Shown: positions 5,157 through 62,762, counted from the stretch's first letter. The stretch is 64,000 nucleotides of DNA from Macrostomum lignano (GCA_002269645.1 NIVC01001405.1:62001-126000), one strand, 5' to 3'. Translations and numbers: made by a program. The notes: a model not told the origin generated them from the sequence alone.

Positions 5157-6801
5157 TCATCCAGAAGCGGTCTGCTGGATCCAGCTGGTGTACATCTGCA
5201 CTCGAGTGTACACTCCCGGTCGCTGGGGCTTGGCGCAGCCCTCGCCCCAGCTCGTGATGCCCTGCAGGTACCAGACTCCGCCGGACTTGCACACGAGCGG
5301 CCCGCCGGAGTCGCCCTGGCACGCGTCCTTGCCGCCCTGCTCGTAGCCGGCGCACACCATGTAGCTGGTGATGGCGCCTCCGTAATGCGACGCGTCGCCG
5401 CAGATCGAGTTGGGTACGATCGGCACCATCACCTGCAGCAGCCTGGTGTTGTCCCCAGTGCCCTGCGTGCTGCCCCAGCCTGTGGCGAAACAGCTGGCCA
5501 TGTTCGACACCGGCGAGCTCGGCAGGCACACCGGAGACACCTGCGAGTTGAACTGGAACGGCCGGTCCACCCGCATCATGGCCAGGTCCTGGTTAGTCCG
5601 GCTCGAGTCGTAGTTCGGATATCGAACTACCTGCGTCACCTTGCGTCTCTGCAGCGTCGCCTCAGTGCAGTCCCGGCAGTGTCGTCCCGCGTCAACGCCC
5701 CACATCGACGGCGACATGTAGTTCTCGACGCAGTGCGCGGCCGTGATGATCCAGTTAGCGTTGTAGATGCTGCCGCCGCAGAAGTGGCCGCCGAAGAGAC
5801 GCAGCGACACCATCCAGGGCCAGCTGTTCTTGACAGCCTCCTTGCCGCCCACGATGCGAGTTTCGTCTGGCGGGATGGCTGGCGTGCCACAGCCCGAAGG
5901 TGCTGCAAGAGCAAAGTAAATTGCATTGAGTTACTGGTCTGGCGTAATTCAAGTGCAAGAAAGCTGCTATTCGAGTACCGGAAAATCTGTGAGTTGAAAA
6001 GACCTTAAAAGACGTTAACTTACGTGTCCCGCCTCCTGTGCTTCCCCCCGTACTTCCACCGGTGCTGCCTCCAGTGCCTCCACCAGTATTGCCACCGGTA
6101 TTGCCACCGCCGCTGCAGCTTGTCTCATCGCTGCCATCACCACAGTCGCGAAAGCCATCGCACCACCAGCCAGAAAAAATGCATTTGGAGTTATCCTTGC
6201 AGGCAACCTGGCCACTTGGACAGGTAAGCGTGCTCGTGCAGAATTGTTCGTCCGATCCGTCCTTGCAGTCTTTGATTCCGTCGCACTTCCACTTGGATGG
6301 GTAGCAGCCGTTGCCACTGTTGCAGGCCAAGTAGCCATTGGGACAAGCGATTCGCTTCTGGTACTCGTCTTTGGAAACGAACCGGTACCGCAGCTGGAAG
6401 CCGCCTTTCTCCAGGTAAGCATCGCTAGAGAACACAAGAGCCACAAACGAGCTCTGCGTGAGCACCGACCAGTCTAGGGATCCGCAGAATCGGCCCAGCA
6501 CAGGACTCGAATCGTTTCCGCCCGAATAGACAGTCAGGGAATCGCCCGTACACTCGGAAGTGTACTCGAGGTCAAAACTCACCGATGTGATCTCGATGCG
6601 GTAGTCGGGGCTCCAGGCGCGGATGATGTACCGGCAGACAGAATTCGGCTGGTAGGACTTCCGGCCGTAGAGCCGGTGCGACGCTATCACGGTCTGGTCG
6701 GTCTCGTACAGCAGGTTGACGCCGCAGTTAAGTTCGTCGGCAATTGCGAAATTCAATGTCGCCAGTCCTAGAAGCAATGGCAGCAGTTTAGGCAGCCGCA
6801 T
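5157..6801 (-). CDS. Secreted modular trypsin-like serine protease, copy A (signal peptide-CUB-LDLa-LDLa-Gly-rich linker-S1A protease), about 507 aa
   Basis: Exons 6801-6024 and 5902-5157, phase-1 intron gtaagt...ttgcag. Activation site R|IVGG. Triad motifs TAAHC, DLAMM and GDSGGP. Asp189 (KDACQG) indicates trypsin specificity. LDLa motifs CDGIKDCxDGSDE and CDGFRDCxDGSDE. Confidence 0.95.
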
Positions 6802-12071: not shown

Positions 12072-13681
12072 ATGAGTTTAGTTTTTGTGCTGGCACTGTG
12101 TCCAGCCCTGCTGTCTGCAGCCGCTGCCCAAGAAGTGGCGGCTACTGCCAGCGAAAAGAACTGTGGCGTCGATATTCTGTACCAGACGAACCAAGGAGTC
12201 ATCGCCTCCCACCGCCTGTTCGGCCGCACTCCATACGACGCGGACTCGACTTGCCGCTACTTCATCCGCGCCGACGGCCCGAGCTACCACATCGAGGTGA
12301 TTTCAGTCTCATTCGACCTCGAGTACACATCGGAGTGTTCGAGCGACTCTCTGATTGTGTACGACGGCTGGAATGACTCCAGCTCCGTCCTTGACCGCTT
12401 CTGCGGCGGCGGCTCCTGGTCGGTTTTGTCGCAGTCCTCGTCGATACTGCTGGTATTCAAAAGTGATTCCTACCTGCAGAAGTCCGGCTTCCAGCTGCGC
12501 TACCGATTCGTGTCAAACGACGAGTACCGCACCAGAGTGCCCTGCCCAAGTGGCTATATTTCCTGCCGATTTGGAGGATTTTGCTACCCTTCAAAGTGGA
12601 AGTGCGACGGCATCAAAGACTGTCCAGACGGCTCCGATGAGAAGTATTGCTCGATTACGCTGAACTGCCCGATAAACCAGCGACCCTGCAAGGACAACTC
12701 CAAATGCATCTTCAACCAGTGGTGGTGCGATGGCTTCAGAGACTGCTCAGATGGCAGTGATGAGGTTTGTGGAGGCCAGACGACAACAACTGCCAGGCCA
12801 CCGGTGACTACAACCACAGTGTCGCCCATCACCACAACGAAGCCGCCATGTAAGAATAAAACACATCAAAAAGTTTTTTTAGAGCTTCTATTCTTTAATT
12901 ATTAGATTAAAATTTTGTTTAAAATTTCTTTCCAGCACCGTCAGGCTGTGGCAGGCCCGCCATCCCGCCAGACGAAACTCGCATCGTGGGCGGCAAGGAG
13001 GCTGTCAAGAACAGCTGGCCCTGGATGGTGTCGCTGCGTCTCTTCGGCGGCCACTTCTGCGGCGGCAGCATCTACAACGCTAACTGGATCATCACGGCCG
13101 CGCACTGCGTCGAGAACTACATGTCGCCGTCGATGTGGGGCGTTGACGCGGGACGACACTGCCGGGACTGCACTGAGGCGACGCTGCAGAGACGCAAGGT
13201 GACGCAGGTAGTTCGATATCCGAACTACGACTCGAGCCGGACTAACCAGGACCTGGCCATGATGCGGGTGGACCGACCGTTCCAGTTCAACTCGCAGGTG
13301 TCTCCGGTGTGCCTGCCGAGCTCGCCGGTGTCGAACATGGCCAGCTGTTTCGCCACAGGCTGGGGCAGCACGCAGGGCACTGGGGACAACACCAGGCTGC
13401 TGCAGGTGATGGTGCCGATCGTACCCAACTCGATCTGCGGCGACGCGTCGCATTACGGAGGCGCCATCACCAGCTACATGGTGTGCGCCGGCTACGAGCA
13501 GGGCGGCAAGGACGCGTGCCAGGGCGACTCCGGCGGGCCGCTCGTGTGCAAGTCCGGCAGAGTCTGGTACCTGCAGGGCATCACGAGCTGGGGCGAGGGC
13601 TGCGCCAAGCCCCAGCGACCGGGAGTGTACACTCGAGTGCAGATGTACACCAGCTGGATCCAGCAGACCGCTTCTGGATGA
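12072..13681 (+). CDS. Secreted modular trypsin-like serine protease, copy B (signal peptide-CUB-LDLa-LDLa-Thr/Pro linker-S1A protease), about 507 aa
   Basis: Exons 12072-12849 and 12936-13681, phase-1 intron gtaaga...ttccag. Same domains and catalytic motifs as copy A. Confidence 0.95.
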
Positions 13682-15008: not shown

Positions 15009-16806
15009 TAATTTAGATTTTCAAACTAAAAATAAAGTCAGATAACCGCAGTCTGAGCGAAGCAGATTGATAAAATTTCTACTAGTTCGGGTGAAGCGTT
15101 CTAAACTAGGCTGAAATTATCCATTTCCGTTTTAAATGACATCATTTCTCTTTATGAGACTAATTAAAAAATGAGTCTCATATTAAAATTCATCAGGCTT
15201 TTGGCTTTACTCAATACGAATACACAGTCCTTTCTGCTGTCCCACAATGGCAACCAAAGAGTACAGAGTTAATATGGCGAGCCAATATCGCCAGTAAGAG
15301 GAAGCTAAAAGTGCAAATCACTGACTGTGTCCGGACTGAGATCACCAGTTTTATTGTAATGATCGGGATTTGAAACTGTAATCAACTGAGTTTTTGCATC
15401 AATCAGAGTGACAGATCAAGAATTCCAATGTTTTTAGTGACAGAGGTGGAACACTCTAAGCACTATGTTTTATTGATAAACTGTGTGTACGTACTACTTA
15501 TGAGTATTAAGGATTTCAACTGCTTTCTCGCAATCGCTATTTTGCATATTGATATAACAACGGCTCAAGTTATCCACAGTCTGGAAAGTCAAAAAAGCAG
15601 ACTAAAGCAGACTCTCAGCCACTTCTCCCTATGTCAGGTCTCTGAGTCTGAAGCTCAGCGGGAGTAGGTGAATAATAATTCAGTCACTTCAGGAAAAGAC
15701 GATTTGACAGAATTTTGTATGTATACTGCAACAACAACTACTACTAATTGCAGGATCGAGGGCTGTAAGCACCCTGGAAGCGCAACGCTTTCGCGACATA
15801 GTCCGGCAACCAGCGCTGATGCAACTCTGTAGTGAGTTGCAAGTGTACTTGTATGCGCTAGTCGCTAGAGCGGGGTTGGGGGTTGCTATTGTACAGCATG
15901 TAGGTGCTTTCCACTCACCCTATCGTATTTAACCTGCGTATCGATCTAGTAAACGCCAAGAGGCTTCGTCAACTCTCAGTCGTATCTCTCTGCATTAGTC
16001 TACAACTTAGTGACATTAGTGACAACCTCCCGGCCAGTTTTCTTGCACAAGCCCCAAGTTACTGTGTTTACTGCTGAACTGCTCTGCCGCTAAACTTACT
16101 TCTAGATGTAGTCGAGAACCCATATACTCTCGTAGGAAAACCATTCCGCTTGAAAAATGAAATACGAACTCGTGAACTCGAATTAAAACAAAAATTTAGA
16201 TTTCTGCCCTGTCCGAACATCTTTCTTAGGATATTTAATCTAGTCTAATTTATCGAGCTGCTGCAATGTAACAGTAACTGGTTTAAACTGTTTAGACTGC
16301 GCGTGCGAATCAGCGCGCTTGTGGTGCCTGCTCAGGGGAGTCGGCGGAATGGCAGTAATGCCTCTCGCCGGTTGTGTGACAATGTCGCTTAAAGTGCTCC
16401 CTTCTGCGTCTATAAAAAACGATGGAAATTATTAATCCGCTATAATTCACTTGTCATTCGGTATCAGCCGTTGTCACAAGTTGGGAGACCCATCCTCTCT
16501 AATTGCATAAACCGTCATTCTTCTGAACTGAAAATGGACTGAAAATCCACTTCAGCTTCAGCGACACCAATTGGTTGATGGATTGGATGGCTAAAAGTTC
16601 CTAATTGCGAGTATATTGATTGACTGGATCGTCTGTCAAATAATTTTGACAGAGCACTGCATCAATTTAATCATTAACCCGATTGACAGATGGGTCGCAT
16701 TGGATCTGTCAAAAGGTATAAAGCTTTACATTTCGAAGCTGTAAGAAGCATTTTTGACAGAGGCAAAAGAAAGATGCTCAACTATTCTGTGTTTGCTAGC
16801 GAGCTA

Positions 16807-17520
16807 ATGACAATTCTGCACCGAATGATGATGCTGATGCTGCTGCTCCTGCTGCCAGGCCTCGGACTCTCGGCATGTCCCCCGCCTTTCTTCCCAGCGC
16901 ACGGAACCTGCTTGTTCAATGAGTCGCGGACCAGGTTTACTTGGTGCGCTGCCAATCAACAGTGCCAACTCATCGGAGGCGAGCTGCTGTGGTCCTATGA
17001 CGTCATCAGGTTGAGCTCATTCGGCATCAAAGCGTGGATTGGAGCGGCTGACCTTGCCGACGAATGCGGATTGAGCAGATCCGGATGGCAGCTCGTGAAC
17101 GGCAGGGGCGTTCTGCCCACCGATCACTCGTTGTGGGTGAGCTCAGAGCCAGACGGAGGAGACCAGGACTGCCTGCTGCTTTTAGCCAGCAATCAACTGG
17201 CGAATGCAATGTGCTCACAAAAATTCGGATGCGTATGTGAGCAGCAAGTCGGACCAGTCCAGCCAGCCGGAGTTGCCTCCTGGCGAAGAGTTCAGTTCAA
17301 GCGGGTCGACTTCAACTCGAACTCAAACTGCTGCTTCAATGACGTTGCCGCTTCAAGCGCCATCCAGTGCGTGGCGGCCGCACTGAGGGCCGGCCGCAGC
17401 TGCAGACACGCGCTGTACAATGGGAAGCTGAAACTGTGCCGACTGCTGCTGTTCACCGACTCGCAGGTGGAGATGCATATAGAGACTGGCGAGGACTGGA
17501 AAAAGTTCAGTCTGCATTGA
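16807..17520 (+). CDS. Secreted C-type lectin domain protein with a C-terminal PAN/apple-like module, intronless
   Basis: Hydrophobic signal (MMMLMLLLLLPGLGLSA). CTLD motifs CPPPF, TWCAANQQC, WIG, W..SEPDGGDQDC and C....GCVCE. C-terminal C..SAIQCVAAA..C....Y....CRL pattern. The Met at 16807 or the MMM run is more likely than the ORF start at 16690. Confidence 0.8.
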   Translation: MTILHRMMMLMLLLLLPGLGLSACPPPFFPAHGTCLFNESRTRFTWCAANQQCQLIGGELLWSYDVIRLSSFGIKAWIGAADLADECGLSRSGWQLVNGRGVLPTDHSLWVSSEPDGGDQDCLLLLASNQLANAMCSQKFGCVCEQQVGPVQPAGVASWRRVQFKRVDFNSNSNCCFNDVAASSAIQCVAAALRAGRSCRHALYNGKLKLCRLLLFTDSQVEMHIETGEDWKKFSLH

Positions 17521-19614: not shown

Positions 19615-22600
19615 ATGGCGGCTATGCAGCATTTGAAATCGTCGGCCCGAAAGATTACTTTTTCGATCCGGATAAAGCAAGCCGTGTTTCTCCTGTTCTT
19701 GCTGCTCAAGTTCAAGATTCTCCGTGTTCCGCTCTTTCATTGCTGCTATCGTGCTGCTACCTTCGAACTTCTGGCTACTCGAGGTTCAGTCACTGGCCGG
19801 CAGCTCCGATGGCCAAGTCAGTGCGCAGAAGATAGTTTGATTCAGAGCGATTTACCTGGAACATCTCGGTCAGTCACGAAGGGAACATTTTAAACAAAAT
19901 GGACAGGCTGGAAAAGCTTGCAACAGTGAATGGATGGAAACCAGATTGGATGAAAGAATGCCGCAGCAGGAAATCTTGCAGCTTAGATTTTTACAAAAAA
20001 GCGCTCGACGAAGTCAAAGTTAGCAAAGCTGCTCACGTCAGCTACAGCTCCAAAGTCGGACACTTCGTTGAGTGCTTCCACATGCCAGAGGCCGACCTGG
20101 CCTGCCCGTTCCTCCACCAGCTGATGTTGCGCTCCCTGAGCAAGGACGGCCGCCTCTTCCGTGACGTCCAGTTCGTGAGCTACACCGACACCTTGGATCG
20201 AGAGCTCCCTAAAAACCAGGGTGTCGGCGTGCTGCCAAGCAAGAAAAGGGCCAATACAATATGCGAACGAGTTGAGTCCACTGGACAAATGTTCTATACA
20301 TTCACTGTCACTTTGCTCTACCACTTACTCATCGCCACAGCCGGCTGCATGGTGTATTTCACTGCCTCCACCATCGCATTCATCTCTGGTCTGAAAGAGT
20401 GCGGCTTCCTGCAGCTCATGTTCAGCAATGGACTGTCGGTGGGAGCCTACTGGACTGTTATCATCACTTCAGTAGTGGTGGAGTGCGCAGTGTTTTCCGC
20501 AGTCATCGGGCCCTGCTACACGCTGCAGTGCTCAGACTATTTTCCTGCAAAGCGTGCGCTACAGTTCGGACTCGTCTTCTTCGCCTACATCTACTCGATG
20601 GCGTCGCTGAGCCTCCTGCTGACTGTGCTTCTGCGCACCTTCTACCTCATTGTGGTGGCTACGGTGGCCATCATCATGGCGATGGTTTCAATCACTGTGT
20701 TGGGCGTGATTAATCTGACAAAAATGGAGGAGATGGACTACATTCTTAACACTCTGTTGATATTCCCACCTGGTCACGTGGTTCAATATTCGCTGTACAC
20801 ATTATACACTTTTCGATCTAATGAGTACATGAAATGGAATAATTTTCAGAAGGACTATCTGAAGACAGCGCTAACAGGAATGATGGCATTTCCTCTCGTC
20901 ATGACAGTGCTGGCGATATATTTAGACTTCATGATAAGCAGCGGCAACGGCTTTCGGCTACCTTTTACTTATATATTTAGTCCAAGTTTCTGGATGCCTA
21001 AGGAAGACGCACCCAAGACTGACCTACCCATGGAATTTAAAGAGCCGGAGGACCCCGAGACGATAGAACCAGTGCCCGGTGGGTCGCCGGCAGTTTGCGT
21101 GAATGATTTAAGCGTTAGCTACGAACGAGGCTGCACTCCGTTCAGAAACCGGGAAAATTTTGTTCAAGCCTTGGATTCATTTACCTGTAAGTGAAAACCT
21201 GATAGAGTTATTTTCTTTCTACGTAATTTCTTTTGTTTTTGTTTGAACCGTAAAATAGTTTACTTGCAAACTAAGCTTTAAAAAGTGAATACAAATGTGC
21301 CGCTAAAAAATTGGACAGCTTCGCATCATAAAAAATGTGCACTGGTTTCTCCAAACTGCCAAATATTGCAGGCACAATCTACCGCGACCAGATTACCGCC
21401 CTGATCGGGCACAACGGTGCTGGAAAGACCACTCTGATCCGGGCTCTCACTGGCGACCTGACTCCGTCAAGCGGCGCTGCTTACATCGGCAATCGGATGG
21501 TCCGCGACCCCTACCAATGCATGACACTGCGCCGAATCGTGAGCGTCTGCAGCCAGACAAACATGCTGAGCCAGCAGCTCACTGTGATGGAGAGCCTCAA
21601 GCTGGCAGCATTGAGCAAAGGCTTTACATTGGAGAGCCAGCTTGAAAATGTCAATAAAATGCTTGAGCGACTGCTGCTAAGTGGCAAGGAAAATGTTCGA
21701 GCAGTGGACCTGAGCGGTGGACAGTTGCGAAAGCTGTGCTGCATCATATCTCTGCTGGGTGACCCGGAAATAATTTTGCTGGACGATCCCACTAGGGGTC
21801 TCGACCCCGTGTCTAGAAGGCATCTCTGGCAGATTATGGAAGAGCGCAAGCAAGGTCGCTGTCTCATAATGTGCACTCAGTTCATGGACGAGGCGGATAT
21901 GCTAGCAGATAGAAAAGTGGTGATTTCTGGAGGCCGGCTTATCTGCGCGGGATCGTCGCTGTTCCTAAAGAATCGATTTGGCTGTTGCCCAACTATCAAC
22001 GTATCGCTGAGACCTGAACGGAAGGCTCAAGCGTTCGTCCACACATTGCCACGCGGGGTTACTCTGATCAACCAATCAGGCACGGAGCTGCAGTTAAACG
22101 TCTCATTTGCACAGTCAAAAGCAGCCTCTGAGTTGCACCTGCTAGCTGCCGTTGTGAAGAAGCTCGAGTGGCATAGAAGACGAAAAGGATCCCCAGTTGC
22201 CGCATTCGGTGTGTCGCAAGCCAACTTGGACGATATTTTTATGCGCATCAAGGATCTGGACACTGGGTTTATTGTATCGGGCATTCGGTCCCGAAACCTA
22301 GCCAGTATGATAAGTATATCCACAAAGGAAGAGCCGCCAAAAAGGCGCATGGGAGATTTGGCACTACTACGGCAGAACGATCTTGAAGTTAGTCAGCTGC
22401 GGCGTTCAGTTTGCAGGACATTTGCATCGCTGATGGCGACGAATCTGCGCCGTCAGGTAAGATCGTCGGTGCAAGTCATTTGCCGCTTTGTGATGCCTCT
22501 TGTGCTCATTGCAGTTGTTGGCATTTTGGCTTACATGGAAAAAAACAACTACAAGGTAAACTATCCCATGGCAAAGTATCTTATCTGGGATGTCTCCTAC

Positions 22601-25148
22601 AACAGGTCCTTTAAAGAGCTGATTTATACCTCTACAGTGCAGCAAATTATGGCAGAAGCTGTCAGAAAGCCAGTAGTATCACTGTATTCAACTGACAATG
22701 TTGTTTGCGTGTACGACAAAACAGGAGAAGAAAAAGTCGCTCGGATTGCCTGCAAATATCTGGCCAACTACCACTTCGATGTGGTGCGGAAGGGCAAGGA
22801 GTCAATCGGAGATTTCATTCTTCCTGGTCAGCAGTTAAGACCGGAGCTAGAGAATCTCTGCAAAGAGCATTGTTACATCATTTATGCCAGTTCATGGAGC
22901 GGGACACAATCAAATGGAGACAGATCATTTTCTATTGGACACTTTTGGCGCAAGCCCCGGCATGAAGTGTCGGAAAAGCCGCTGGCTTCCTACTTTGTAA
23001 AACTTTGGAAAATGTTTGCCCCCGATGACATCTCTCCGGAATCGGTTCACATGATAAGCGTCATACCGTTTCTGCAATACTACAGCATTCAAAACGAGCT
23101 TATTGTTCTAGTTTTGCTATTCTCGATCATCCCAGTCACCTTCATGTCCGACCCTGTTGAAGATAGATCCACTGGCGTCAGGCAACAGATGCAAATCATG
23201 GGACTGAGCAGCTTTGCTTACTGGGTCAACACGTTCGTCATCCACTGGATTCAGTACCTGACATTCGCTGTGCTATCAATTCTCGTGTGCATGATATGGG
23301 ATCGGTATATCAGCGCATTTCTGTTCTGCTATGTTTGGCTTCCACTTCTGCTGCTGGGCACCGTGAGCAACCTTCTGTGTATCTACTGCATTGGTGCGAT
23401 GCAGCGCATTCCAAGCAACAGTGTCTTAGCGATATACCTGTTCTTCATCCTCTTCGTCTTGTCCGTGGTCACGTTTTTAATGAAAAGCCGCATCGCCAGC
23501 GCAATTGCGATGTGGCTCGTTCCACCGCTCGCTCCCATGATGCTGACCTTCACGGCACTGAAAATTGTTGTTTATGGCTTACTTTACCATAACGAGGAGT
23601 TGACGAAAGAAATTCCCGAACTGCGAGAGACTTTTTTAAATTTATCTGCCACCGTACATGCACTCAGTGCAATGGGAGCTCATATTTTATTGCTAATCAT
23701 ATTGTTAATCATTACCGAAAACTGGTCCGCTATTAAATATTTTGCAAACGCGCGATGTGCATCTCGAAATGTCGCTAAGCGCAGACAGAAAAGAAAATTA
23801 AATGAACAAGATGAAAAAGGCGTTCTGATGGAAACAGAGCGGCTATTAAAGAATCCGAGGAGCAACCAAAACTTGCTGGAAGTCCGCAATGTGGAGAAAG
23901 TCTACCCCAACGGCGTCTATGCAGTGCGCGGCGTCACCTTTGGCGCCATGACCGGTGAAATTTTCGGCCTGCTCGGCCAGAACGGAGCCGGAAAGACTAC
24001 TCTGATGTCGGCCATCGTCGGACAGCTGACCGCATCGAGTGGCGAAGTCGAGGTCCGCCATTTGGGCGGCGCCTGGCTGGAAAGTCACCTGGGAACTCAG
24101 CGCGGCGTCGTTGGCTTCTGCCCGCAGCACGATCCGCTGTTCCGACAAGTCACAGTTGAGGAGCACATTATCTTCTACGCGCGTATCCGAGGCGTTCCAG
24201 AGAACACTGTCATGAAGCAGACAGACAGGCTCATTCAAGGACTCGGACTTGTCGATGATAGGTTCAAGCCAGCTAAACAACTTTCATGTGGTAATAAACG
24301 CAGCCTGTGCCTCGCCATTGCGCTTCTTGGATGTCCATCTGTTGTCGTCATTGATGAGGCCTCCTCAGGAGTAGATCCGGAGAATAAACGCGGCATCTGG
24401 CGGGCGATCCGCGGTATAGCACTGGGCGGTCATCGGACAGTGGTGGTGACCACGCACAGCATGGAGGAGGTGGAGGCGCTCTGCAGCAGACTGTGCGTCA
24501 TGGACAAAGGCAGCATGATCGGATTCGGCACTGTCCAGCAGCTGCGAAGTCAGTAAGTATTTTTTTGTTTAGTGCAGTGGGTCAGAGGAGCAGCAAGGAA
24601 GCGAAAGTATAGGCTTTAGCTGCATTTTCTCGCGACTGACAGGTACTTGGACAATAGTACCGTATTAGTGAGTACCTCTGTGCGAAAATTATCTGCTGAG
24701 TTTTTTACTTTTTGCTCGTCATTATACCAAGCATAGAAAACTTTTCACCAGTTCATCCCAGTCTACTCTGATCTCTGGGCTTCAGCAGGCTCTATCTGTC
24801 AAATTTTCATGAATCTCTTACAGGTACGGCAAAGACTACACCTTGGATGCTCTGCTGTCGGCTACGTCGAGCCAAGATAAACTGTCGAAACGCAAGGCTG
24901 AATTGAAGTCGGCCATTAAGAAAAAGTTTCCTCATGCCATCCTCATTGATGATGTTGGGGCGTCAGTCCAGTTCCGGATACCGACTCCGACCACGGCTAG
25001 ACTGTCAGCAAGGATCCAGTGGTTGGCCAACATGAGAGCTAAGCTGAATGTGCAGTTCTTCAGTCTCTACCAGATGTCTCTCGACCAGATATTCGTCAAA
25101 ATGATGCGCAAGCACACAGTTGCAAACTATGCAGATGTAGAAGTCTGA
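19615..25148 (+). CDS. Full-size ABCA-subfamily transporter, tandem copy 1 (about 1690 aa), with two apparent +1 frameshifts near the N-terminus
   Basis: Exons about 19615-21186, 21372-24552 and 24824-25148. TMD-NBD-TMD-NBD layout. Walker A GHNGAGKTT and GQNGAGKTT, LSGGQ, LDP, TTHSMEEVEALC. Removing one T at 19735-37 and one at 19836-38 restores colinearity with copy 2. Confidence 0.9.
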
Positions 25149-26103
25149 GTTCTAACATTATCTTACCACTGCTTGCAGCATAATACATGGCTGTTATTTT
25201 TTTATTCTATCAACTGTGTTTCGCTGTCCGATCTCACTGTTTTCCGCCGTCATTTTTGGAAAAACAGCCTTAAAATTCAGTTTAAAAACTAAAAGAACAT
25301 TGAGGTTTACTACATGTGCGACAAGCGAACGCGACTTTTAACTAAAGTCGCAAGCAAAAGAATATACTTTTGATCCAAAAGCTACCACGTACTTGAAGTA
25401 CCTGAACGCAGCTATTTTATTTAAAACTAAATCAAGTCTTGGAGTTTTGAATTGTTTGAATTATTTGAGTTTAGAGTACAGATGACCACCATCAACTATC
25501 GAGCAGCTGACTCGTGTACGCTTACGGTTTAGTGAGACATCCGGAATGGTTATTATGAATTTCTCGTAACTCATTTCCCTCCTCTTTGATTAAGTATCCT
25601 GTTGCAGCTAGCTCAGGTAGCCGCAACAGGATAGGTGGTTGTTCTAAGGACATGCAAGGAATACAAGCATATATGTACATGTAGGCTGTTTTTTACACGT
25701 GCCTGAGGCTAATTATGCTCTGAGGACTTCCATTTATTTGAATAGTCTTTCAGTAGTGTACGTGAAGTTGTTGCATGCACATAGCAAAGGGATAGGGGGA
25801 TGGTTCTCAACATATTAAATGAACGGGCTATTTGAGCAGTAACTGCACGCAAATGATCGATTGCTTAGACGAAACTCTGGTCTCTGGCGATATCAAAGAT
25901 TGCTCGGAAGTAAGAATGTATTTATAGCTTGCAAATTCGCCAAATTCGAAGTACGTAGATTTCAGCTGTAATGACGGCAGTCTCTAAATTGTCTATGATA
26001 ATAGTATTCAGATGAATTATTTGTTGCATTGAAAAAAATTGAACCCGAAAAGATTTAAATCACACCTCGCCCATCTTGGTAGCGCACTCTCGTAATTATC
26101 ACG

Positions 26104-29100
26104 ATGTTTTCCGTTAGCTACTCGATACGGGTGAGACAGGCCCTGTATTTGCTGCTCCTTCTGCTGAAGTTCAAGGCCCAGCGCCTACCAGTGTTTGTTG
26201 TGGCTATATTGCTTCTGCCGTCGAATTTCTGGCTGTTCGAAGTCCTGTCTGGCGTGATGAGCTCAAATGAGGAAACTGTCGCTCGAAAGTTGATGAACGC
26301 CGGGACTTTTCCCTGGAAGGCGCTGGTTGGGAGCAGTGGGAATTTTTCACGGCCAATCAGCAATCTGCAGGCGTTGGTTGCGGCCGGCAAACCGAGGAAC
26401 AATTGGCTTATCCAGTGCGGGTCACCGCAGAGCTGCAGCCTTCAGTTCTATAAGCAGCTGCGTCCCGCAACCACCGGGGAAATGTTCGCTCGAATCAGTT
26501 TCGAGTCGAAGAGTACAGCGCTGGTTGAGTGCACCGTACTGCAGGAAGAAGAGCTGGCCTGTCCGTTCCTTCACCATCTCGCGCTTCAGTCCCTAAGTCC
26601 CAGCGGCCGAGTCTTCAGGGACGTACAGTTCATAAGCCTAACTGATACTGTCGATCATTCCAAGACGGAGACGCACAGAGCGAGTCGGCGCTCGATTTGC
26701 AGCCGCGTCGAATCCACTGGAAACGTGTTTGTGGCGCTGATGCACACTGTGCTGTACCACATCCTCATCGCTACTGCCGGCTGCATGGTTCACTTCACCG
26801 CCACCACTATCGCCTTCATCGCTGGTCTCAAAGAGAGCGGCTACCTGCAGCTCATGATCAGCAACGGGCTGTCAGTGGGAGCGTATTGGACTGTCATCAT
26901 CGTTTCCATAGCTATAGAATGCGCAGTCTTCTCGGCCATTATTGGGCCCTGCTACGCGCTTCAGTGCCCCAATTTCTACCCGAAAGGATCAGCCATCAAA
27001 CTGTCAATGATGTTCTATGCCTACTGCTTCTCCTTAGTGTCTCTGAGTCTTCTAGCCACTGTGCTGTTGCGCTCCTTCTTCCTCATTGTAGTTGCCACCG
27101 TGGCCATCATCATTTCGGTGGTCACAGTCACAGTCCTGGGAGTGATCCGCATCATGGCAATGAAATCAGATGACTACCTATTGAATGTGCTGCTGGTGTT
27201 CCCACCTGGCCACATGACGCAGTACGCTCTTTATACTCTGCTACCAAAAACCTCACGCGACTGGCACGAAGCGCAAATCAGCTACTTGCAAAAAATTCCG
27301 AATGGAATGCTGATTTTCCCTATCGTTGTCACGCTGCTCACGATATACGCGGATTTCGTGCTCAGCAGCGGAAACGGAATGGGTCTGCCGCTGACCTTTC
27401 CATTCAGCAGAAGCTTCTGGCTGCCCGATGAGGCCAAGATGGTCAGCTCGATTCCCGTCAGCTGCGCCGACTCGGATTGCAGCAAGTCCTACATCGAGCC
27501 GCTGCACTCCGGCCTGCCAGCCATTTACATCAACGACATCAGCGTGTGCTACGACCGCGGCTGCTGCGCGCTGGAAAATCAGGAAACCGTGGTGCAGGCG
27601 CTCGACTCAATTTCATGTGAGTCGAAAGTTGAAAAGTAGAAAAAATCCAGAATCTCTCCTTGTTGGACTGAGTTTGTCAATGTTCAAATGCTTCACTACA
27701 TCAAGCAAAAGGCTACGGGTATATTTCGCTACGCTTGTTAGAATAAGTATATATTTGTACGAAAACTTATGGCTGTTAAAAATTAGGGAAATGAAGAGTT
27801 GGAATTCAAAACTTGAGCTTTCGTATATTCGTTTATTTCTTTTATTTCATTTGAACTTCATTTTGCTGAAACCATCGAATGACTGAAATTTCTCCCCAAC
27901 TGTTTAAGACCGTTCTATGACGATGCTTCCTATAATCAAGTTAGCACTAATCCGCAGGTACCATCTATCAAGACCAGATCACGGCTTTGATCGGGCACAA
28001 TGGCGCTGGGAAAACAACCCTGATTCGAACGCTGACGGGCGAGCAGACGCCGACAAGCGGCGTGGCTGTAATCGGCGATCGCCTCGTCACGGACCCGTAC
28101 CAACGCATGGCACTGCGGCGCGTAGTTAGCACCTGCGGTCAGACAAACGTGCTCTGTCAGCAGCTCACCGTGATGGAGAGCATTACTTTAGCAACCCTGA
28201 GCAAAGGTTTCATGCTGGAGAGTCAAATTGACAACATTAAAACTATGATGGAGCAGCTCGGATTAGCGGACAAGGCCGATGTTCAAGCCTTCGACCTGAG
28301 CGGCGGCCAGCTCCGGAAGCTGTGCTGCATCATTGCGCTTATTGGTGACCCGAAAATCGTGATGCTGGACGAGCCCACCAGCGGTCTGGACCCCGTGTCG
28401 CGGCGCTGCCTGTGGCGAATCATGCAGGAGCGCAGGCAAGGCCGCTGCATTATGCTGTGCACGCAGTTCATGGACGAGGCGGACGTGCTGGCGGACAGAA
28501 AGCTGTTCCTCTCTGGAGGCCGACTGGTCTGCGCTGGATCGTCGCTGTTTCTCAAGCATTTGTTCGGCTGCTGTCCCACAATCGGCATATCGTTGAGGTC
28601 GAGCCAGGACGCAGCGAAACTATTGGAATCGATACCGCCGGGTGTTCACCTTCTCAATCGGTCCGGAACGGAGCTTCAGCTGAGTGTGTCGTCTTCGGGG
28701 TCGATAGTCTCTTCAGAGCTGCATTTGTTGGCTGAGACTGTGAAGATTCTTGAGGAGCTGCAGAGGCAGAACGGGTCCCCTGTAGAAGCGTTCGGTGTGT
28801 CTCAGGCTAACCTCGACGAGATTTTTATGCGTCTGGAAAATTTCAACACAATGGATGTGGTTTCGGCGATCAAAAATCGGAGACTGGCCAGCATTGTGAG
28901 CCTCAAAAGTCCAGACGATGAACTAAAACTAGTGACTTCTAGAGTAGACCATTCTCTACTTGAACTACGACTGGATTACTACAAGGCTAATAAACTGCAG
29001 CGCTCATTTTCCAAGACTTTCGGCTCGCTTTTAGTCATGAACCTTCGCCGGCAGGTTCGCTCGCCCGTGCAAGCGCTTTGCCGTCTAGTCATGCCTTTGG

Positions 29101-31737
29101 TGCTGCTGGCTATCGTATTCTCCGTTGCTTTCGTGGAAAAGAAACGGTATGAGCTGAGCCAGTCGATAGCAAAGCATCTTACCAGAGAGGGTCACAAAAT
29201 GTCTCCGGTTGATCTGTTGGAAAACACAATGAAGCAGTCGCAGTCCGAGCTGATCAGAGTTCCAGTTTTGCCGACAGCTCTTTCAGAAAACCTTGTTTGC
29301 CTCTTTGATTCCAGCGATGAAGAGGAGATGGCAACGAACGCCTGTTTGACTGCTTTTCCTAGGGCTTTTAAAACCAAATTAATGCTGAAGCCCAAGTCTG
29401 TCAGCGTTGATAAGTTTGTCCTGCCTACAGACAGTCTATTGAACCCGGAGCTACGGCAGAATTGCGAGAACGTCTGCTTCATTCTGTACGCTAGCTCTTG
29501 GAACACCAGTCACCCAAATGCCAATCGATCATTAGTTATCGGACAGTTTTGGCACAAATCTCGATCGGAAATAATCTTCAAGCCCATGGCCGACTATTTC
29601 TCAATGATGTGGCGATATTTTGTTTCAACAGACGACGATAGCGATCCTTGGAAAACTGTTCGCCTGACCGCAGTAGTACCGTTTTCGCAATACTACACAA
29701 TTCAAATGGAAATTTTTGTCCTTGTCCTGCTGTTCTCAGTTGTCCCCGTCACCTACATGTCTGACCCGGTTGAGGACCGGTCCAGCGGGGTCAGGCAGCA
29801 GATGAGGGTCATGGGATTAGACAGCAAAATCTATTGGCTCAATACGTTCGCTATTCACTGGATCCAGTATGCTGTGTTTATCGTTCTATCGGCTGCAATG
29901 TGCCTAGTTTGGAATCGGTACCAGAGTCTGTTTCTGCTGTACAATGTGTGGATTCCCATGCTACTGCTGGGATCGGTGAGCAACTTGCTTAGCGTCTACT
30001 GCATAGGAGCTCTGCAGCGCACTCCGAGCTACAGCGTGCTGGCCATCTACCTGTTCTTCATCCTTTTCATCTTGGCCGTCCTGACTTTCGTAATGACGAA
30101 CCGCATCGCTGGTGCCGTGTGCGTGTGGCTCGTACCTCCACTGGCTCCCATGATGCTGCCATTCACGGCCATGAAAATGGCTGGCTATGGCCTGCTGTTC
30201 TTTGAACTAAGCCATCTGGGCGACATACCGGAGCTGCAGAAGGTTTTTCTGAACTATCCAGACACAATTCACTCGCTTGTTGCCATGGCTTTCCATATAG
30301 TACTGCTGTTCGGGCTGCTGATACTACTGGACAACTGGCCTACAGTTTATTCCCTGGGGCAGCAGTGCTGCAACAAGGACAAGGCCGCTGACTCTCACCA
30401 ACTCAAACAGAGTCAAAAAGATGACGACGAGCTCGGCGTTCAAACTGAGGCTCAGCGTGTGTTGAAAAATCCTCGGAGCGATCAAAATCTACTCGAGGTT
30501 CGCGACGTGGAGAAAGTCTACCCGAACGGCGTGCGAGCAGTTCGGGGCGTCACCTTCGGGGCGATGACTGGCGAGGTCTTCGGCCTTCTGGGCCAGAACG
30601 GAGCCGGAAAGACCACCCTGATGTCAGCCATTGTCGGGCAGCTAGCGGCGACACGAGGTAAAGTCGAGGTGCGCCAATTTGACGGCGACTGGATGGTCAG
30701 CCAGCTGGGCACTCAGCTGGGTATCATCGGCTTCTGTCCGCAGCACGACCCGATCTTCCGGCGCATCACCGTCGAGGAGCATCTGACTTTTTACTCGAGA
30801 GTTCGCGGAATTCCCGAGCTTCTGGTGCCAGAGCAGACGGACAGGCTGATTCGCGGCCTGGGCCTTGCCGAGCACAGATTCAAGGCGGCCAAGGAGCTGT
30901 CAGGTGGCAACAAGCGCCGCCTCTGCCTCGCCATTGCGTTACTTGGCTGCCCTTCCATTGTTGTCATCGATGAGGCCTCCACCGGAGTGGATCCGGAGAA
31001 CAAGCGCGCCATCTGGAAGGCAATCCGCAGCCTGGCAGAGGGCGGTAAACGAACCGTCGTGGTAACTACTCACAGCATGGAGGAGGTGGAGGCGCTCTGC
31101 GGTAGGGTGGGCATCATGGACAGGGGTGGCATGATCGGGTTCGGCACTGTCCAGCAGCTGCGCAGTCGGTAAGTGAATCGCGTTTGATAGTTCCGCACCA
31201 GGGACAGAAACAGTGACAAGGATAGGGAAAGTAGGAGGAACAGTTGCAGATGCTGGGACTGGCAACATGGACAACGACAAGTCAGGAGTAAGCATTTTAA
31301 GAGTAAAGACGGTTCTGACACCAATCTACAAGAATGAGCCACGGACGTCTCCCAGCCCTCCCCCCCTTTACGTCCATCCCAGCTACGGCAAGGCCTACAC
31401 CCTGGAGGCTCTCCTGCCTTTTTCGGCGGATCTCCACGAAACCTCGTCGCGCAAATCGGTGCTGAAAGCGGCCATTCAGCAGCAGTTCCCCCAGGCTGCT
31501 GTTCTGGACGACGTCGGCGCATCAGTACAGTTCCAGATCCCGACGGAGTCGGTGGCCAGCCTCTCCGATAGCATTCGATGGCTGGCGGACAACAAAACGG
31601 AGCTGAACGTGCAGTACTTCAGTCTGCACCAGATGTCATTGGACCAGATTTTCGTCAACATGATTCGACAGCACGCTGAGGCAGTCCTCTCCGAGAAGGA
31701 TTCGGCAACGGGAAAGTCCGATCAGGGAGGCTGCTGA
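26104..31737 (+). CDS. Full-size ABCA-subfamily transporter, tandem copy 2 (about 1692 aa)
   Basis: Exons 26104-27616, 27958-31168 and 31383-31737, with intron positions identical to copy 1. Motifs GHNGAGKTT, LSGGQ, DEPTSGLDP, GQNGAGKTT, LSGGNKRRL, DEASTGVDP and THSMEEVEALC. Confidence 0.95.
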
Positions 31738-34828: not shown

Positions 34829-38735
<3,907 letters not shown>

Positions 38736-48256: not shown

Positions 48257-51200
48257 TCACACCTGGCAGAGGTAAAACTAATAAATCTGTGTAATTAGCA
48301 CACTCACCTTCAGTGCGGCTCGCTTCTTATGCTCAGTAATGGCGATTTCCTCCTCAATCCAATGGGGCACGTCCGGTATGGCCTTGGCTATGATGTACTT
48401 TAGAACTAGTACGATGTGCTGCGGTGGGAAATGCGAGCGATTGGTTGAGTGGGGTGACGGGTGCTCTGGCTGGAGTGTGTACATTGGGTGGAGTAGGGTG
48501 GCGGGTGCTCTGGCTGGAGTGTGTACATTGGGCGGAGTAGGGTGGCGGGTGCTCTGGCTGGAGTGTGTACATTGGGTGGAGTGAGGTGGCGGTTGCTCTG
48601 GCTGGAGTGTGTACATTGGGTGGTGGAGTGGGGTGGCGGGTGCGCTGGCTGGTGTGTACATTGGGTGGAGTGGGGTGGCGGGTGCTCTGGCTCGAGTGTG
48701 TACATTGGGTGGAGTGGGGTGGCGGGTGCTCTGGCTGGAGTGTGTACATTGGGTGGAGTGGGGAGGCAGGTGCTCTGGCTGGCGTGTGCATTTGAATATA
48801 ATGGGGTGGCAAGTGTCAATTTGATCAAATCACATTTGATTTGGTGCTGTTGGCCAGAAAAGTACTCCATGATGGCTTGCACCAATAAATACAAAACCTG
48901 AAACCCCAAGCGGCTCACCTCAAACAGGACCAGCAGCAGGACTACCTGAGCCGGGCTGAGGCTGGGGAACCATCGGCTGACTGCGCCGCTGACGCCGAGC
49001 AGGGCAACATTCACGGTGACGGCTACGCAGCTGATGCCCTCCAGAGCCATCTGCCAGACGCCAATGTCTGACACCTTGGTGCCGAAGGGACGCCTGAAGC
49101 CGGTGCACAGTTTGAAGGCGTCGGACCGGATCTCCATGACATTGTTGATGAGGCAGAAGACGCCAGCGAGGGGCAGGGCGCAGGAGAACATGCACATGTA
49201 GCCGTACTGGATGAACATCTCCAGGTAGTCTTCGTAGGGGTCATCGTACTGGACAATGGGATTGGCAAACAGAAGGGAAAAATAGGAAATCGAGGTTCAA
49301 GTAGTGTCTCTAAGCTACGCAGACACCACAGACACTGGGCCAGCACCCTCAGCTCTAAGCTACGCACACACCCCAGACAGTGCTCCAACTCCCCTCTAAG
49401 CTACGCACACACCCCAGACACTGCTCCAACACCCCTCTAAGCTACGCACACACCCCAGACAGTGCTCCAACACCCCTCTAAGCTACGCACACACCCCAGA
49501 CAGTGCTCCAACACCCCTCTAAGCTACGCACACACCCCAGACACTGCTCCAACACCCCTCTAAGCTACGCACACACCCCAGACAGTACTCTAACACCCTC
49601 AGCTCCAAGCTACGCACACACCCCAGACACTGCACCAACACCCTCAGCTCTAAGCTACGCACACACCCCAGACACTGCACCAACACCCTCAGCTCCAAGC
49701 TACGCACACACCCCAGACACTGCGCCAACACCCTCAGCTCTAAGCTACGCACACACCCCAGACACTGCTCCAACACCCCTCTAAGCTACGGACACACCTC
49801 AGACACTGCACCAACACCCTCAGCTCTAAGCTACGCACACACCCCAGACACTGCTCCAACACCCTCAGCTCTAAGCTACGCACACACCCCAGACACTGCA
49901 TCAACACCCTCAGCTCTAAGCTACGCACACACCTCAGACACTGCGCCAACACCCTCAGCTCTAAGCTACACACACACCCCAGACACTGCTCCAACACCCT
50001 CAGCTCTAAGCTACGCACACACCTCAGACACTGCTCCAACACCCTCAGCTCTAAGCTACGCACACACCCCAGACACTGCGCCAACACCCTCAGCTCTAAG
50101 CTACGCACACACCTCAGACACTGCGCCAACACCCTCAGCTCTAAGCTACGCACACACTCCAGACACTGCGCCAACACCCTCAGCTCTAAGCTACGCACAC
50201 ACCTCAGACACTGCGCCAACACCCTCAGCTCTAAGCTACGCACACACCCCAGACACTGCGCCAACACCCTCAGCTCTAAGCTACGCACACACCCCAGACA
50301 CTGCGCCAACACCCTCAGCTCTAAGCTACACACACACCCCAGACACTGCTCCAACACCCTCAGCTCTAAGCTACGCACACACCCCAGACACTGCTCCAAC
50401 ACCCTCAGCTCTAAGCTACGCACACACCCCAGACACTGCGCCAACACCCTCAGCTCTAAGCTACGCACACACCCCAGACACTGCTCCAACACCCTCATCT
50501 CTAAGCTACGCACACACCCCAGACACTGCGCCAACACCCTCAGCTCTAAGCTACGCACACACTCCAGACAGTGCTCCAACACCCAATAGTAAGTCAAACC
50601 AGACACTCACGGCTTCCAGACTGGCTTCAACTTCGGTCTGTGTGATTCCCGGACTGCCCTCGGTGTCCGGGGCAGTGTCCGGTTCGGCCGAGTCGCGCTT
50701 CTTCTGCCTTTCGTAGTCGAGGCTCATCTTGTAGTTACGAATTCGGGACATCACAAACGGGATGCCGACCTCCTTGATGTTGTCGATGATTTGGCGGGTG
50801 AGCAGGAGAGCTGCGAGTTGCTGCAAGATTCAGCGGATGGTGCCATTAGGCACAGGTCTTAGGCGAGTGTTTGGGGTGACACAGAATGACATAGATAATA
50901 CCCGCTGCAAGATTCATCCAATTTCTAAGCCATCAACAAGTAATTTAGTAAGTACTTCGAACTAACTAAACGAAACAAACCACAAAGATTCGACATCCGG
51001 TGTCAGTACGAACCTGCTTGAGCATGCTCATGTCCTGGCGGTAGAATGCCACGTAGAATAGCGACAGGAACGAGTTCACCGATTGAAACTGGAGTTTTTA
51101 GGAGTCTGTTTTTTAATTTTTAATTGATAAATGTGACATGAGCTAAATAATAATTTTGTAAACAGATGGACTTACCAAAACCAGCTTGATGATCAGGTGA

Positions 51201-61194: not shown

Positions 61195-61427
61195 CGGGCC
61201 CGACTGGGTGGAGATTTTCTCTCTGTTCACAAACAGACGCTTATGTATAGACATGACTTTTACAGCCTGCTTTTGGACCTTTAGTACTTATCGTGCTTGC
61301 TTTTTACAATTAGGTTCACCGCAAATTTATTATTCGTACGTACTACGCTCGTAGTTTAAAACTCGTAATTTAACTGCATAGGAAGCAGTTAGAGTCCATG
61401 GCGTACTTAATAGTCTGGCACACTCTG

Positions 61428-61985
61428 GCCTACCAATGTAAACTCGCTCCCCCCCCCCGGCTCCTGCCCTCTCCGCTCCAACCACCCCAATGTACACTCC
61501 CCCAGCTCCTGCCCTTCTGCCAACCACCCCAATGTACACTCCCCCAGCTCCTGCCCTTCTGCCAATCACCCCAATGTACACTCCCCCCAGCTCCTGCCCT
61601 TCTGCCAACCACCCCAATGTACACTCCCCCAGCTCCTGCCCTTCTGCCAATCACCCCAATGTACACTCGCTCCCAGCCCAGCTCCTGCCCTTCTGCCAAT
61701 CACCCCAATGTACACTCGCTCCCAGCCCAGCTCCTGCCCTCTCCGCTCCAACCACCCCAATGTACACTCGCTCCCCGCCCAGCTCCTGCCCTCTTTGCTC
61801 CAACCACCCCAATGTACACTCGCTCCCCGCCGAGCTCCTGCTCTCTCCGCTCAAACCACCCCAATGTACACTCGCTCCCTGTCCACCTCAAGCCCTCTCC
61901 GCTCCAACCACCCCAATGTACACTCGCTCCCTGTCCACCTCAAGCCCTCTCCGCTCCAACCACCCCAATGTACACTCGCTCCCCG
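61428..61985. repeat. C-rich minisatellite with 36-52 bp variable units, downstream of SPTLC2
   Basis: Recurring ACCACCCCAATGTACACT(CGCT)CCC...GCTCCTGCCCT. Confidence 0.93.
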
Positions 61986-62762
61986 ACAAACTCTAAACTT
62001 CTCTATTCTATAACGGTGCTTAAGCTGTCGGTTTGTCCATACTCGGCACTGTTTATTGTATAACCAGCTTAGTAATGCACTGCTGGCGCTTCGGTTCCGA
62101 TAGTAAGTGTTATTAGTCTGCGAACGGGATTCCCGATCTTTGCCGAAGCGTTTACAGTTGAACTCATTTTTTGCACGCAGCACTCAGCTGTCCTGTCGGC
62201 GAGCATTTTGGCTCCGGTTTATTTCTATCAATTTGACTTTTTGTCATAACAGACAAACTGTGACACACTGGATGGACAAAACTTGCTGTGATTGACTTTT
62301 CTTTGCTAAGGCAAATCCACCCTTTCTGCAGCTTCTGTGTACCTGTTTAAAAGCAAGCTTACTTTTCTCGCCTTGGACTTATTAACCGCTTAATGACTTT
62401 GCTTTTGCACTGTGTTTACTTGCTTTTCTCTGAGTTCGAGTTTGTTTTGCACTGTTTGTGGCTATGTGGAACCCTGGCGCACTTTAAGCGACATTGTCAC
62501 ACAACCGGCGAGAGGCATTACTGCCCCCCCCCCCTGAGCAGGCACACAAGCGCGCGGATACGTACGCAGTCACACGCACAGGCACAGACCCACACAAGAG
62601 TGCACAGCGGCCCTGAATGTATTTATGGTTAGGCCTTGGGCGTTAGTTGCACGAGCAGAGCCAAGCTGAGATTCCAATTTAGCCTCAAATAAATGCGACT
62701 GCACTTGGAATCGAGCTTGGGACGCTGACCACAGGGCTCCGGCCCCCTCTTGTACACTGTTC

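Follow-up and report, generated by a model that had tools for sequence, protein, structure and literature searches.

A tandem pair of predicted ABCA-type transporters in Macrostomum lignano with graded departures from consensus at one composite ATP site

We analyzed a stretch of 64,000 nucleotides from contig NIVC01001405.1 of Macrostomum lignano (assembly GCA_002269645.1), hereafter called the window (window position 16104 corresponds to position 78104 of the record), which carries two head-to-tail genes for predicted ABCA full transporters on its plus strand. Copy 1 (19615-25148; BOX15_Mlig027343g1, PAA68296.1) and copy 2 (26104-31737; BOX15_Mlig033575g1, PAA68297.1, 1692 aa) have three exons each, read from open reading frames (ORFs) and GT-AG splice sites at 19615-21186, 21372-24552 and 24824-25148 for copy 1, and at 26104-27616, 27958-31168 and 31383-31737 for copy 2. 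Intron positions and phases are identical in the two genes, all introns are of the GT-AG type, and the two proteins are 57% identical. The spliced copy 2 protein matches PAA68297.1 (P0121) at 100% over its full length. The spliced copy 1 model of 1597 aa is the same as the annotated PAA68296.1, whose coding sequence (CDS) starts at the ATG at 19899.

Both genes are predicted to encode ABCA-type full transporters with short extracellular domains. The domain order of transmembrane domain (TMD) 1, nucleotide-binding domain (NBD) 1, TMD2 and NBD2 is found on a single polypeptide, and the ABCA-typical Walker A motif GHNGAGKTT and an NBD2 signature of the xSGGN type are present. In the 1597-aa copy 1 model, Pfam detects two ABC_tran domains (E 4.8e-50) and an ABC2_membrane_3 domain at residues 999-1209 (39.0 bits, cutoff 31.6), and the two Walker A motifs lie at residues 442 and 1298. 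The top PDB matches of NBD1 in a phmmer search were ABCA3, ABCA4, ABCA1 and ABCA7 (E 5e-81 to 3e-76, with both NBDs aligned), and the matches ranking after them had E values of at least 1e-31. In copy 2 and in the copy 1 of a sister contig described below, a first transmembrane helix (TM1) and then an extracellular domain precede TM2; in the window's own copy 1, the TM1 region is broken by two frameshifts.

Motifs were assigned to the two composite ATP sites on the basis of solved ABCA4 structures. Site 1 is formed by NBD1's Walker A, Walker B and H-loop together with the signature of NBD2, and site 2 by NBD2's Walker A, Walker B and H-loop together with the LSGGQ signature of NBD1; site 1 of ABCA4 contains the NBD1 Walker A and Walker B as well as the NBD2 D-loop (PMC11405800). 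In copy 1, the NBD1 Walker A (GHNGAGKTT, 21407-21433) is intact, and site 1 thus retains ATP-binding residues. The catalytic Glu of the NBD1 Walker B (ILLDDPT, 21773-21793) is replaced by Asp (GAT, 21785-87), the switch His of the NBD1 H-loop (CTQFMDEAD, 21872-21898) by Gln (CAG, 21878-80), and the Gly of the NBD2 signature (LSCGNKRS, 24281-24304) by Cys (TGT, 24287-89). The same signature helix ends in Ser (AGC, 24302-04), where Arg or Lys is found elsewhere, and both of these NBD2 positions face site 1. When copy 1 is aligned with ABCA3 and ABCA4 from the PDB by phmmer, its Asp falls opposite their Walker B Glu and its Gln opposite their H-loop His. The motifs of site 2 are intact, namely the NBD2 Walker A (GQNGAGKTT, 23975-24001), the NBD2 Walker B with its catalytic Glu (VVVIDE, 24341-24358), the NBD2 H-loop with its His (TTHSMEEV, 24449-24472) and the NBD1 signature (LSGGQ, 21710-21724).

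Copy 2 shows a milder state of the same site. Its NBD1 H-loop (CTQFMDEAD, 28458-28484) also carries Gln (CAG, 28464-66); the NBD1 Walker B (MLDEPT, 28362-28379) has the consensus Glu (GAG, 28371-73), and the NBD2 signature (LSGGNKRR, 30897-30920; GGT, 30903-05) is ABCA-typical. Thus, copy 1 combines loss of the Walker B Glu, loss of the H-loop His and a deviant NBD2 signature with a consensus site 2, and copy 2 has lost the H-loop His and retains the Walker B Glu. Common to both copies are an intact Walker A (GHNGAGKTT), Q-loop Gln and LSGGQ signature in NBD1, and an intact Walker A, Walker B (VIDEAS) and H-loop (TTHSMEE) in NBD2. In the LTVxEHL motif that follows the NBD1 Q-loop, the conserved His has been lost throughout the M. 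lignano clade (S, C or T in its place), copy 1 reading LTVMESL at about 21575-21590 and the copy 2 counterpart lacking the His as well, while NBD2 retains EEHL.

An earlier note on this DNA, made from the sequence alone, had named the three copy 1 codons GAT, CAG and TGT and the CAG of copy 2, had described the NBD2 Walker motifs, the NBD2 H-loop and the NBD1 LSGGQ as intact in both copies, and had placed the three changes in one composite site. All of these codons are present and in frame, the motifs read as described, and the mapping agrees with the site assignment for ABC proteins and ABCA4. Its further claim that the other site is spared holds for the catalytic motifs of site 2 but not for the NBD1 D-loop of copy 1 (RGLD, 21794-21805), in which Ser is replaced by Arg. 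The note had overlooked this substitution, the Arg/Lys to Ser change in the signature helix and the N-terminal frameshifts of copy 1. The D-loop Arg is private to copy 1 and the paralogue Mlig009431, all sister paralogues having SGLD or NGVD. Where NBD columns show a conservation of at least 90% among 131 other ABCA proteins, exactly three private non-conservative changes were seen in copy 1 (E to D in the Walker B, G to C in the signature and, unique to copy 1, R/K to S). All three fall in site-1 elements and none in the catalytic motifs of site 2, a clustering for which a rough estimate gives a chance probability of about 0.03.

The same tandem pair was found on two further, independently assembled contigs of this genome, NIVC01002573.1 (L002) and NIVC01003288.1 (L003), with approximately 99.1-99.2% identity to the window over 13 kb. 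The GAT, CAG and TGT codons are identical in all three contigs, and the three codon states of copy 1 also occur in proteins predicted from the older ML2 assembly; the codons are therefore considered real, which, as far as assemblies can show, answers the concern that the reads might fail to support GAT and TGT.

The N-terminus of copy 1 is a different matter. Codons 1-94 (19615-19898), which are homologous to copy 2 residues 1-95 and include the first transmembrane helix, can be read in the window contig only via two +1 frameshifts. The first, at 19735, is an extra T (TTT here, TT in both sister contigs), and so is the second, at 19836 (TTT vs TT), which gives rise to the stop codons TAG (19833-35) and TGA (19838-40) in the respective frames. 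Because of these two frameshifts, the annotated CDS starts only at the ATG downstream of them. In the three-contig alignment both are private to the window contig. L002 codes for an intact copy 1 of 1691 aa (PAA56790.1, P0134), and the majority consensus of the three contigs has an open copy 1 frame of 1691 codons. Private single-base coding indels amount to 16 in L003, two in L002 and three in the window, and the assembly, built from PacBio data with Canu and polished with short reads, is highly redundant, the sequenced line carrying extra chromosomes (PMC5730564). As such indels are frequent and the assembly is redundant, the copy 1 frameshifts probably reflect errors of the assembly; at most, they would be a lesion carried by a single one of several near-identical copies. 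For the annotation, this means that the deposited PAA68296.1 is truncated at its N-terminus by two probable assembly indels and that PAA56790.1 represents the full length. The frame of copy 2 is kept in the window at 29137, where L002 and L003 are each one A short in an AAAA run; both also have further private 1-nt coding indels in copy 2, and their models are truncated (638 and 619 aa). The A deletion shared by these two contigs may be a systematic homopolymer error or a real allele.

A full-length word-indexed search returned few relatives of these proteins, and the paralogue family became visible only when 1.84 billion representative proteins were searched exhaustively with phmmer; from this search, the closest 150 relatives, 144 of them with two alignable NBDs, were examined. 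M. lignano accounts for all of the dozen closest representatives. A crude neighbour-joining (NJ) tree, built on a fast alignment and bootstrapped 200 times, recovers the M. lignano proteins as a monophyletic clade (200/200), with copy 1 and copy 2 as sisters (200/200). Every readable member of this expansion has an NBD1 H-loop of the form [CS]TQ[FA]M/INEA, except P0149, which has Glu (CTESMHEA). NBD2's Walker A, Walker B and H-loop are canonical in all members other than Mlig009431 (P0172/P0425) and P0149. The NBD2 signature is LSGGN in copy 2, Mlig015942 and three other paralogues; its Gly has been lost in four others (LSEGA, LSFGS, LSVGI and LSIGE), in a further paralogue with ATKGV, and in copy 1 (LSCGN). 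The paralogues therefore form a graded series, with Gln only, Gln plus an altered signature, or Gln plus an altered signature plus Asp, and the word "stepwise" used in the earlier description is appropriate. Among the 144 relatives, a non-His residue in the NBD1 H-loop is associated with a non-Gly residue in the NBD2 signature (7/18 vs 4/126, Fisher p = 4e-5, with phylogeny ignored).

Mlig009431 (P0425/PAA53586.1; P0172), located elsewhere in the genome, has LLDDPSRG and STQFINEA in NBD1; in its NBD2, the Walker A has lost its Lys (GPCGSGTN), the Q-loop its Gln (FCPASN) and the Walker B its Asp-Glu (IENPS). It is probably non-catalytic, and both ATP sites appear dead. The Asp-bearing NBD1s of copy 1 and Mlig009431 both have the D-loop Ser to Arg change (21794-21805 in the window; approximately residues 655-665 of P0425), and Mlig009431 belongs to the other sub-clade. 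Gene conversion between the two genes as the source of the common LLDDPxRG was rejected, their NBD1s being 37% identical. These two independent co-occurrences (n = 2) are suggestive of a possible coupling between the Walker B Asp and the D-loop Arg.

How unusual are these states among ABCA proteins? The NBD1 H-loop residue is His in 126 of the 144 relatives, Gln in 17 and Glu in one, and the NBD1 Walker B reads DE in 142 and DD in two. The Glu to Asp change was seen in only two of about 260 ABCA proteins surveyed, both from M. lignano. Further independent cases of Gln in the NBD1 H-loop were found in a locust, a tardigrade, a pseudoscorpion and a protist. A search with NBD1 as the query (241 aa) yielded mostly short fragments and bacterial DrrA-like ATPases, the nearest non-flatworm NBD1s having TTHFMDEAD. 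We also collected a vertebrate set, starting from a frog ABCA8-like match, of 115 named ABCA8/9/10-like proteins from amphibians, reptiles, birds and mammals with two alignable NBDs. Gln occupies the H-loop position of NBD1 in every one of the 115, in nearly all cases within STQFMDEA, and in almost all of them the NBD2 signature lacks its central Gly (LSAGV, LSAGI, LSLGV or LPAGI; LSEGV or LSEGI in mammals). The NBD1 Walker B of these proteins reads DE, and canonical forms are found for Walker A and LSGGQ in NBD1 as well as for Walker B and H-loop in NBD2.

The principle is therefore not new: in ABCA8/9/10, the combination of Gln with an altered signature is a fixed state already, and reviews list it. 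ABCA8 is a functional transporter whose lack of a standard LSGGQ was remarked on in 2002 (PMC7373792), a structural study noted that signature and H-loop set an A6-like group apart from ABCA1/3/4 (PMC8508924), and a 2020 review places a degenerate nucleotide-binding site 1 (NBS1) in a subset of the ABCA subfamily, where Walker B changes often go with H-loop deviations (PMC7756269). The earlier note had supposed that ABCA proteins normally have two consensus sites, and this premise, with the novelty built on it, falls away in view of the 115 proteins and the review; TQF, which it had expected to be uncommon in fully active ABCA NBD1s, is the rule in a group that includes the working transporter ABCA8. 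In the NJ tree, the vertebrate ABCA8/9/10 group joins ABCA5, which has His, in 200/200 bootstraps, and the M. lignano clade was placed inside or as sister to the vertebrate ABCA5/8 clade in 0/200. Common ancestry of the Gln with that of vertebrate ABCA8 was rejected on this ground, and the Gln is taken to have arisen independently in the M. lignano clade. What is new here, as judged from the sequences, is an independently evolved further case and the rare extra step from Glu to Asp in one paralogue.

We then asked what selection and expression say about copy 1. Between copy 1 and copy 2, nonsynonymous divergence (dN) is 0.34 and synonymous divergence (dS) is about 1.9, which is saturated, giving a dN/dS ratio (omega) of about 0.18 (about 0.13 in NBD1 and 0.15 in NBD2), which shows purifying selection; a value near 1 is not seen. 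Unique changes number 127 in copy 1 and 101 in copy 2 in a relative-rate test (p = 0.10, not significant); across four outgroup paralogues p ranges from 0.10 to 0.54, and no domain has a consistent excess. Neither relaxed selection nor acceleration is thus apparent, and the reading frame is not disrupted in all genomic copies, the frameshifts being confined to the window contig. Differences between contigs comprise four synonymous and five non-synonymous sites in copy 1, too sparse for a test of recent constraint, and about 17 and 21, respectively, in copy 2. For this assembly, the gene models in GenBank come from transcripts assembled under RNA-seq guidance and passed through an expression filter (PMC5730564), which suggests that copy 1 is transcribed from at least one of the three loci. 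A literature search by gene identifier found nothing, nor any expression table. Given the low omega, the lack of acceleration, the RNA-seq-derived models and the confinement of the changes to site 1, the pattern of copy 1 is not that of general decay. Together with the intact sister ORF, these data lend modest support to the earlier preference for a functional asymmetric protein over random decay.

Taken together, the two copies are tandem paralogues of an M. lignano-specific expansion, and we consider it probable, with some reservation, that they are working transporters driven by site 2, with a site 1 that would bind ATP but hydrolyse it poorly. Site 1 is non-consensus across the whole expansion, and site 2 keeps every catalytic residue. 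Binding of ATP at site 1 may persist because the Walker A Lys, Walker B Asp, Q-loop Gln and A-loop Tyr are retained; hydrolysis there would be slow or nil, and the site might hold the NBD dimer together. Hydrolysis at site 2 would power the transport cycle, as has been proposed for TAP1/TAP2 and ABCC proteins. The sequence states and their distribution, the intact sister ORF, the RNA-seq-based models and purifying selection are documented here; the loss of site-1 hydrolysis and a division of labour between the sites are inferred. Once its contribution to hydrolysis had ended, the catalytic residues of site 1 would have been free to change, and copy 1, with the Walker B E to D, the NBD2 signature G to C and the Arg to Ser changes, may have gone furthest along this path with site 2 retained. 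In ABCA4, the same Glu to Asp change (E1087D) abolishes substrate-stimulated ATPase activity and causes disease (PMC11405800), which makes it very unlikely that site 1 of copy 1 is a normal hydrolytic site. Several points weigh against this explanation. The D-loop Arg lies on the side that faces site 2 in the ABCA4 structures. The two frameshifts occur in the window's own copy 1 and, if real, would leave the window locus without TM1. With dS at saturation between the two paralogues, omega is hardly informative on recent times, and the nine between-contig differences in copy 1 are too few to demonstrate constraint. RNA-seq reads are not assignable among three loci that are 99% identical, and our literature search found no biochemical dissection of any protein of this clade or of any Gln-bearing ABCA protein, ABCA8 included.

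A serious alternative, which we nevertheless regard as unlikely, is that Gln leaves site 1 active in the ABCA fold, so that copy 2, the Gln-only paralogues and ABCA8-type proteins would hydrolyse at both sites and only copy 1, with Asp and Cys, would be asymmetric. The Walker B Glu and LSGGN kept by copy 2 and five other paralogues would suit such a view, as would the dependence of substrate-stimulated ATPase on both sites in ABCA4 (PMC11405800) and the same lack of ATPase dissection of Gln-bearing ABCA proteins in the literature searched. However, the TAP site that has the same His to Gln among its changes shows strongly diminished ATPase activity (PMC5277011), the conserved His of LTVxEHL was lost by this clade in NBD1 only, and among ABCA proteins a strong association links Gln to the loss of Gly from the signature that faces it, the two being fixed together in ABCA8/9/10; such an association is expected if Gln already relaxes the constraint on site 1. 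More improbable still is that copy 1, as a young pseudogene or a paralogue without function, is a duplicate in decay, in which the Asp, Cys, Ser, Arg and frameshifts mark the onset of random decay. Two +1 frameshifts within the first 75 codons, an E to D change known as a loss-of-function disease variant in ABCA4, the slightly larger number of unique substitutions (127 vs 101) and the 5:4 ratio of recent non-synonymous to synonymous differences would all fit. Yet the frameshifts are absent from both sister contigs, of which L002 encodes an intact 1691-aa protein, and private indels of 1 nt are a common feature of the coding sequence in each of the three contigs of this redundant assembly built from PacBio data. 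The reading frame remains open over about 1,690 codons and the GT-AG introns are conserved in spite of only 57% identity to copy 2, omega is about 0.18 with a non-significant difference in rate, the non-conservative changes at conserved NBD columns are restricted to site 1, and the gene model is RNA-seq-derived. It also seems quite improbable that copy 1 has changed its job to become an ATP-binding regulator, sensor or partner, like SUR or CFTR in ABCC, and is no longer a primary transporter. Its site 1 is the most degenerate among clade members that retain site 2, its D-loop Arg is unusual, and Mlig009431, having lost both sites, indicates that non-catalytic ABCA proteins do arise in this expansion; but site 2 and both TMDs evolve at the rate of copy 2, and no sequence sign of a new domain or partner was seen. 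Finally, the idea that the three unusual codons are sequencing or assembly errors can, as far as assemblies can show, practically be dismissed: the assembly has many single-base indel errors, but GAT, CAG and TGT are substitutions that recur in three contigs and in the ML2 proteins.

The favoured explanation, site-2-driven transport with a poorly hydrolysing site 1, can be compared with several known systems. The ABCA6-like vertebrate transporters ABCA8, ABCA9 and ABCA10, which belong to the ABCA5-related cluster, resemble both copies as ABCA full transporters with a short extracellular domain and Gln in the NBD1 H-loop. Copy 1 shares both features of their pattern, Gln and an NBD2 signature without the central Gly, and copy 2 shares the Gln only, its signature remaining LSGGN. 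Unlike copy 1, these proteins retain the Walker B Glu; they are not orthologous to the M. lignano clade, whose NBD2 Walker B is VIDEAS as against LDEPS in the vertebrate proteins. ABCA1, ABCA3, ABCA4 and ABCA7 share domain order, GHNGAGKTT and the xSGGN signature of NBD2 with the two copies, but each of their H-loops contains His, each of their Walker B motifs contains Glu, and their extracellular domains are far larger; in ABCA4, both Walker B glutamates are required (PMC11405800). Copy 1 also resembles TAP1/TAP2 (ABCB2/ABCB3), which, as the earlier note had stated, carries the same triad at one composite site, with E to D, H to Q and LSGGQ to LAAGQ at site I (PMC5277011), and a consensus second site. 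ATPase activity at TAP site I is strongly diminished, the site is thought to be regulatory, and the consensus site drives transport (PMC5277011). TAP, however, consists of two half-transporters that form a heterodimer and have the type I exporter fold, in contrast to the single-chain ABCA type II/V fold, and ABCA-type NBDs move about a different axis than those of type I exporters (PMC7756269); the analogy with copy 1 is thus one at the residue level. ABCC proteins such as MRP1 and CFTR are, like copy 1, full-length transporters with a degenerate NBS1, in which replacement of the Walker B Glu by Asp is the most frequent change and the signature of NBD2 deviates as well (PMC7756269), but they belong to another subfamily and fold, and most of them retain the NBD1 H-loop His.

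Besides the transporter genes, the window contains several other features. A non-LTR retrotransposon with long open frames lies on the minus strand at 34829-38735, with AP-endonuclease and reverse transcriptase at 36126-38735 and RNase H at 34829-36142. Two ORFs with CUB and LDL-receptor-class-A domains have opposite orientations, one at 5755-6801 on the minus strand and the other at 12072-13681 on the plus strand, and a serine protease domain of the trypsin type comes after the latter. An ORF for a C-type lectin is located at 16690-17520, and exons of an anoctamin (calcium-activated chloride channel) at 48406-52616 on the minus strand coincide with a strong negative GC-skew at 50-54 kb. Two ORFs of 221 aa on the plus strand (58398-59063 and 61398-62063) may be tandem duplicates; the first, the only one scanned for domains, matches class I/II aminotransferases.

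Degenerate ATP sites have long been debated and have mostly been studied in the type I exporter fold (TAP, ABCC and TM287/288). The present locus is a further case that evolved independently, here in the ABCA fold; copy 1 has the complete TAP-like triad and its tandem neighbour a milder state, and the two copies could serve as a matched pair for biochemistry. A broader possibility, which we put forward only tentatively, is that the expansion represents an independent series of ABCA site-1 degeneration within one genome, leading from Gln only (copy 2, Mlig015942 and others) through Gln with a lost signature Gly (Mlig009542 and Mlig032278) and Gln, Cys, Asp and D-loop Arg (copy 1) to two dead sites (Mlig009431). 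The Walker B Asp is accompanied twice by the D-loop Arg, which would point to a compensatory coupling undescribed for TAP or ABCC. If this is true, the series would amount to an experiment of nature on the manner and sequence in which an ABC ATP site is retired.

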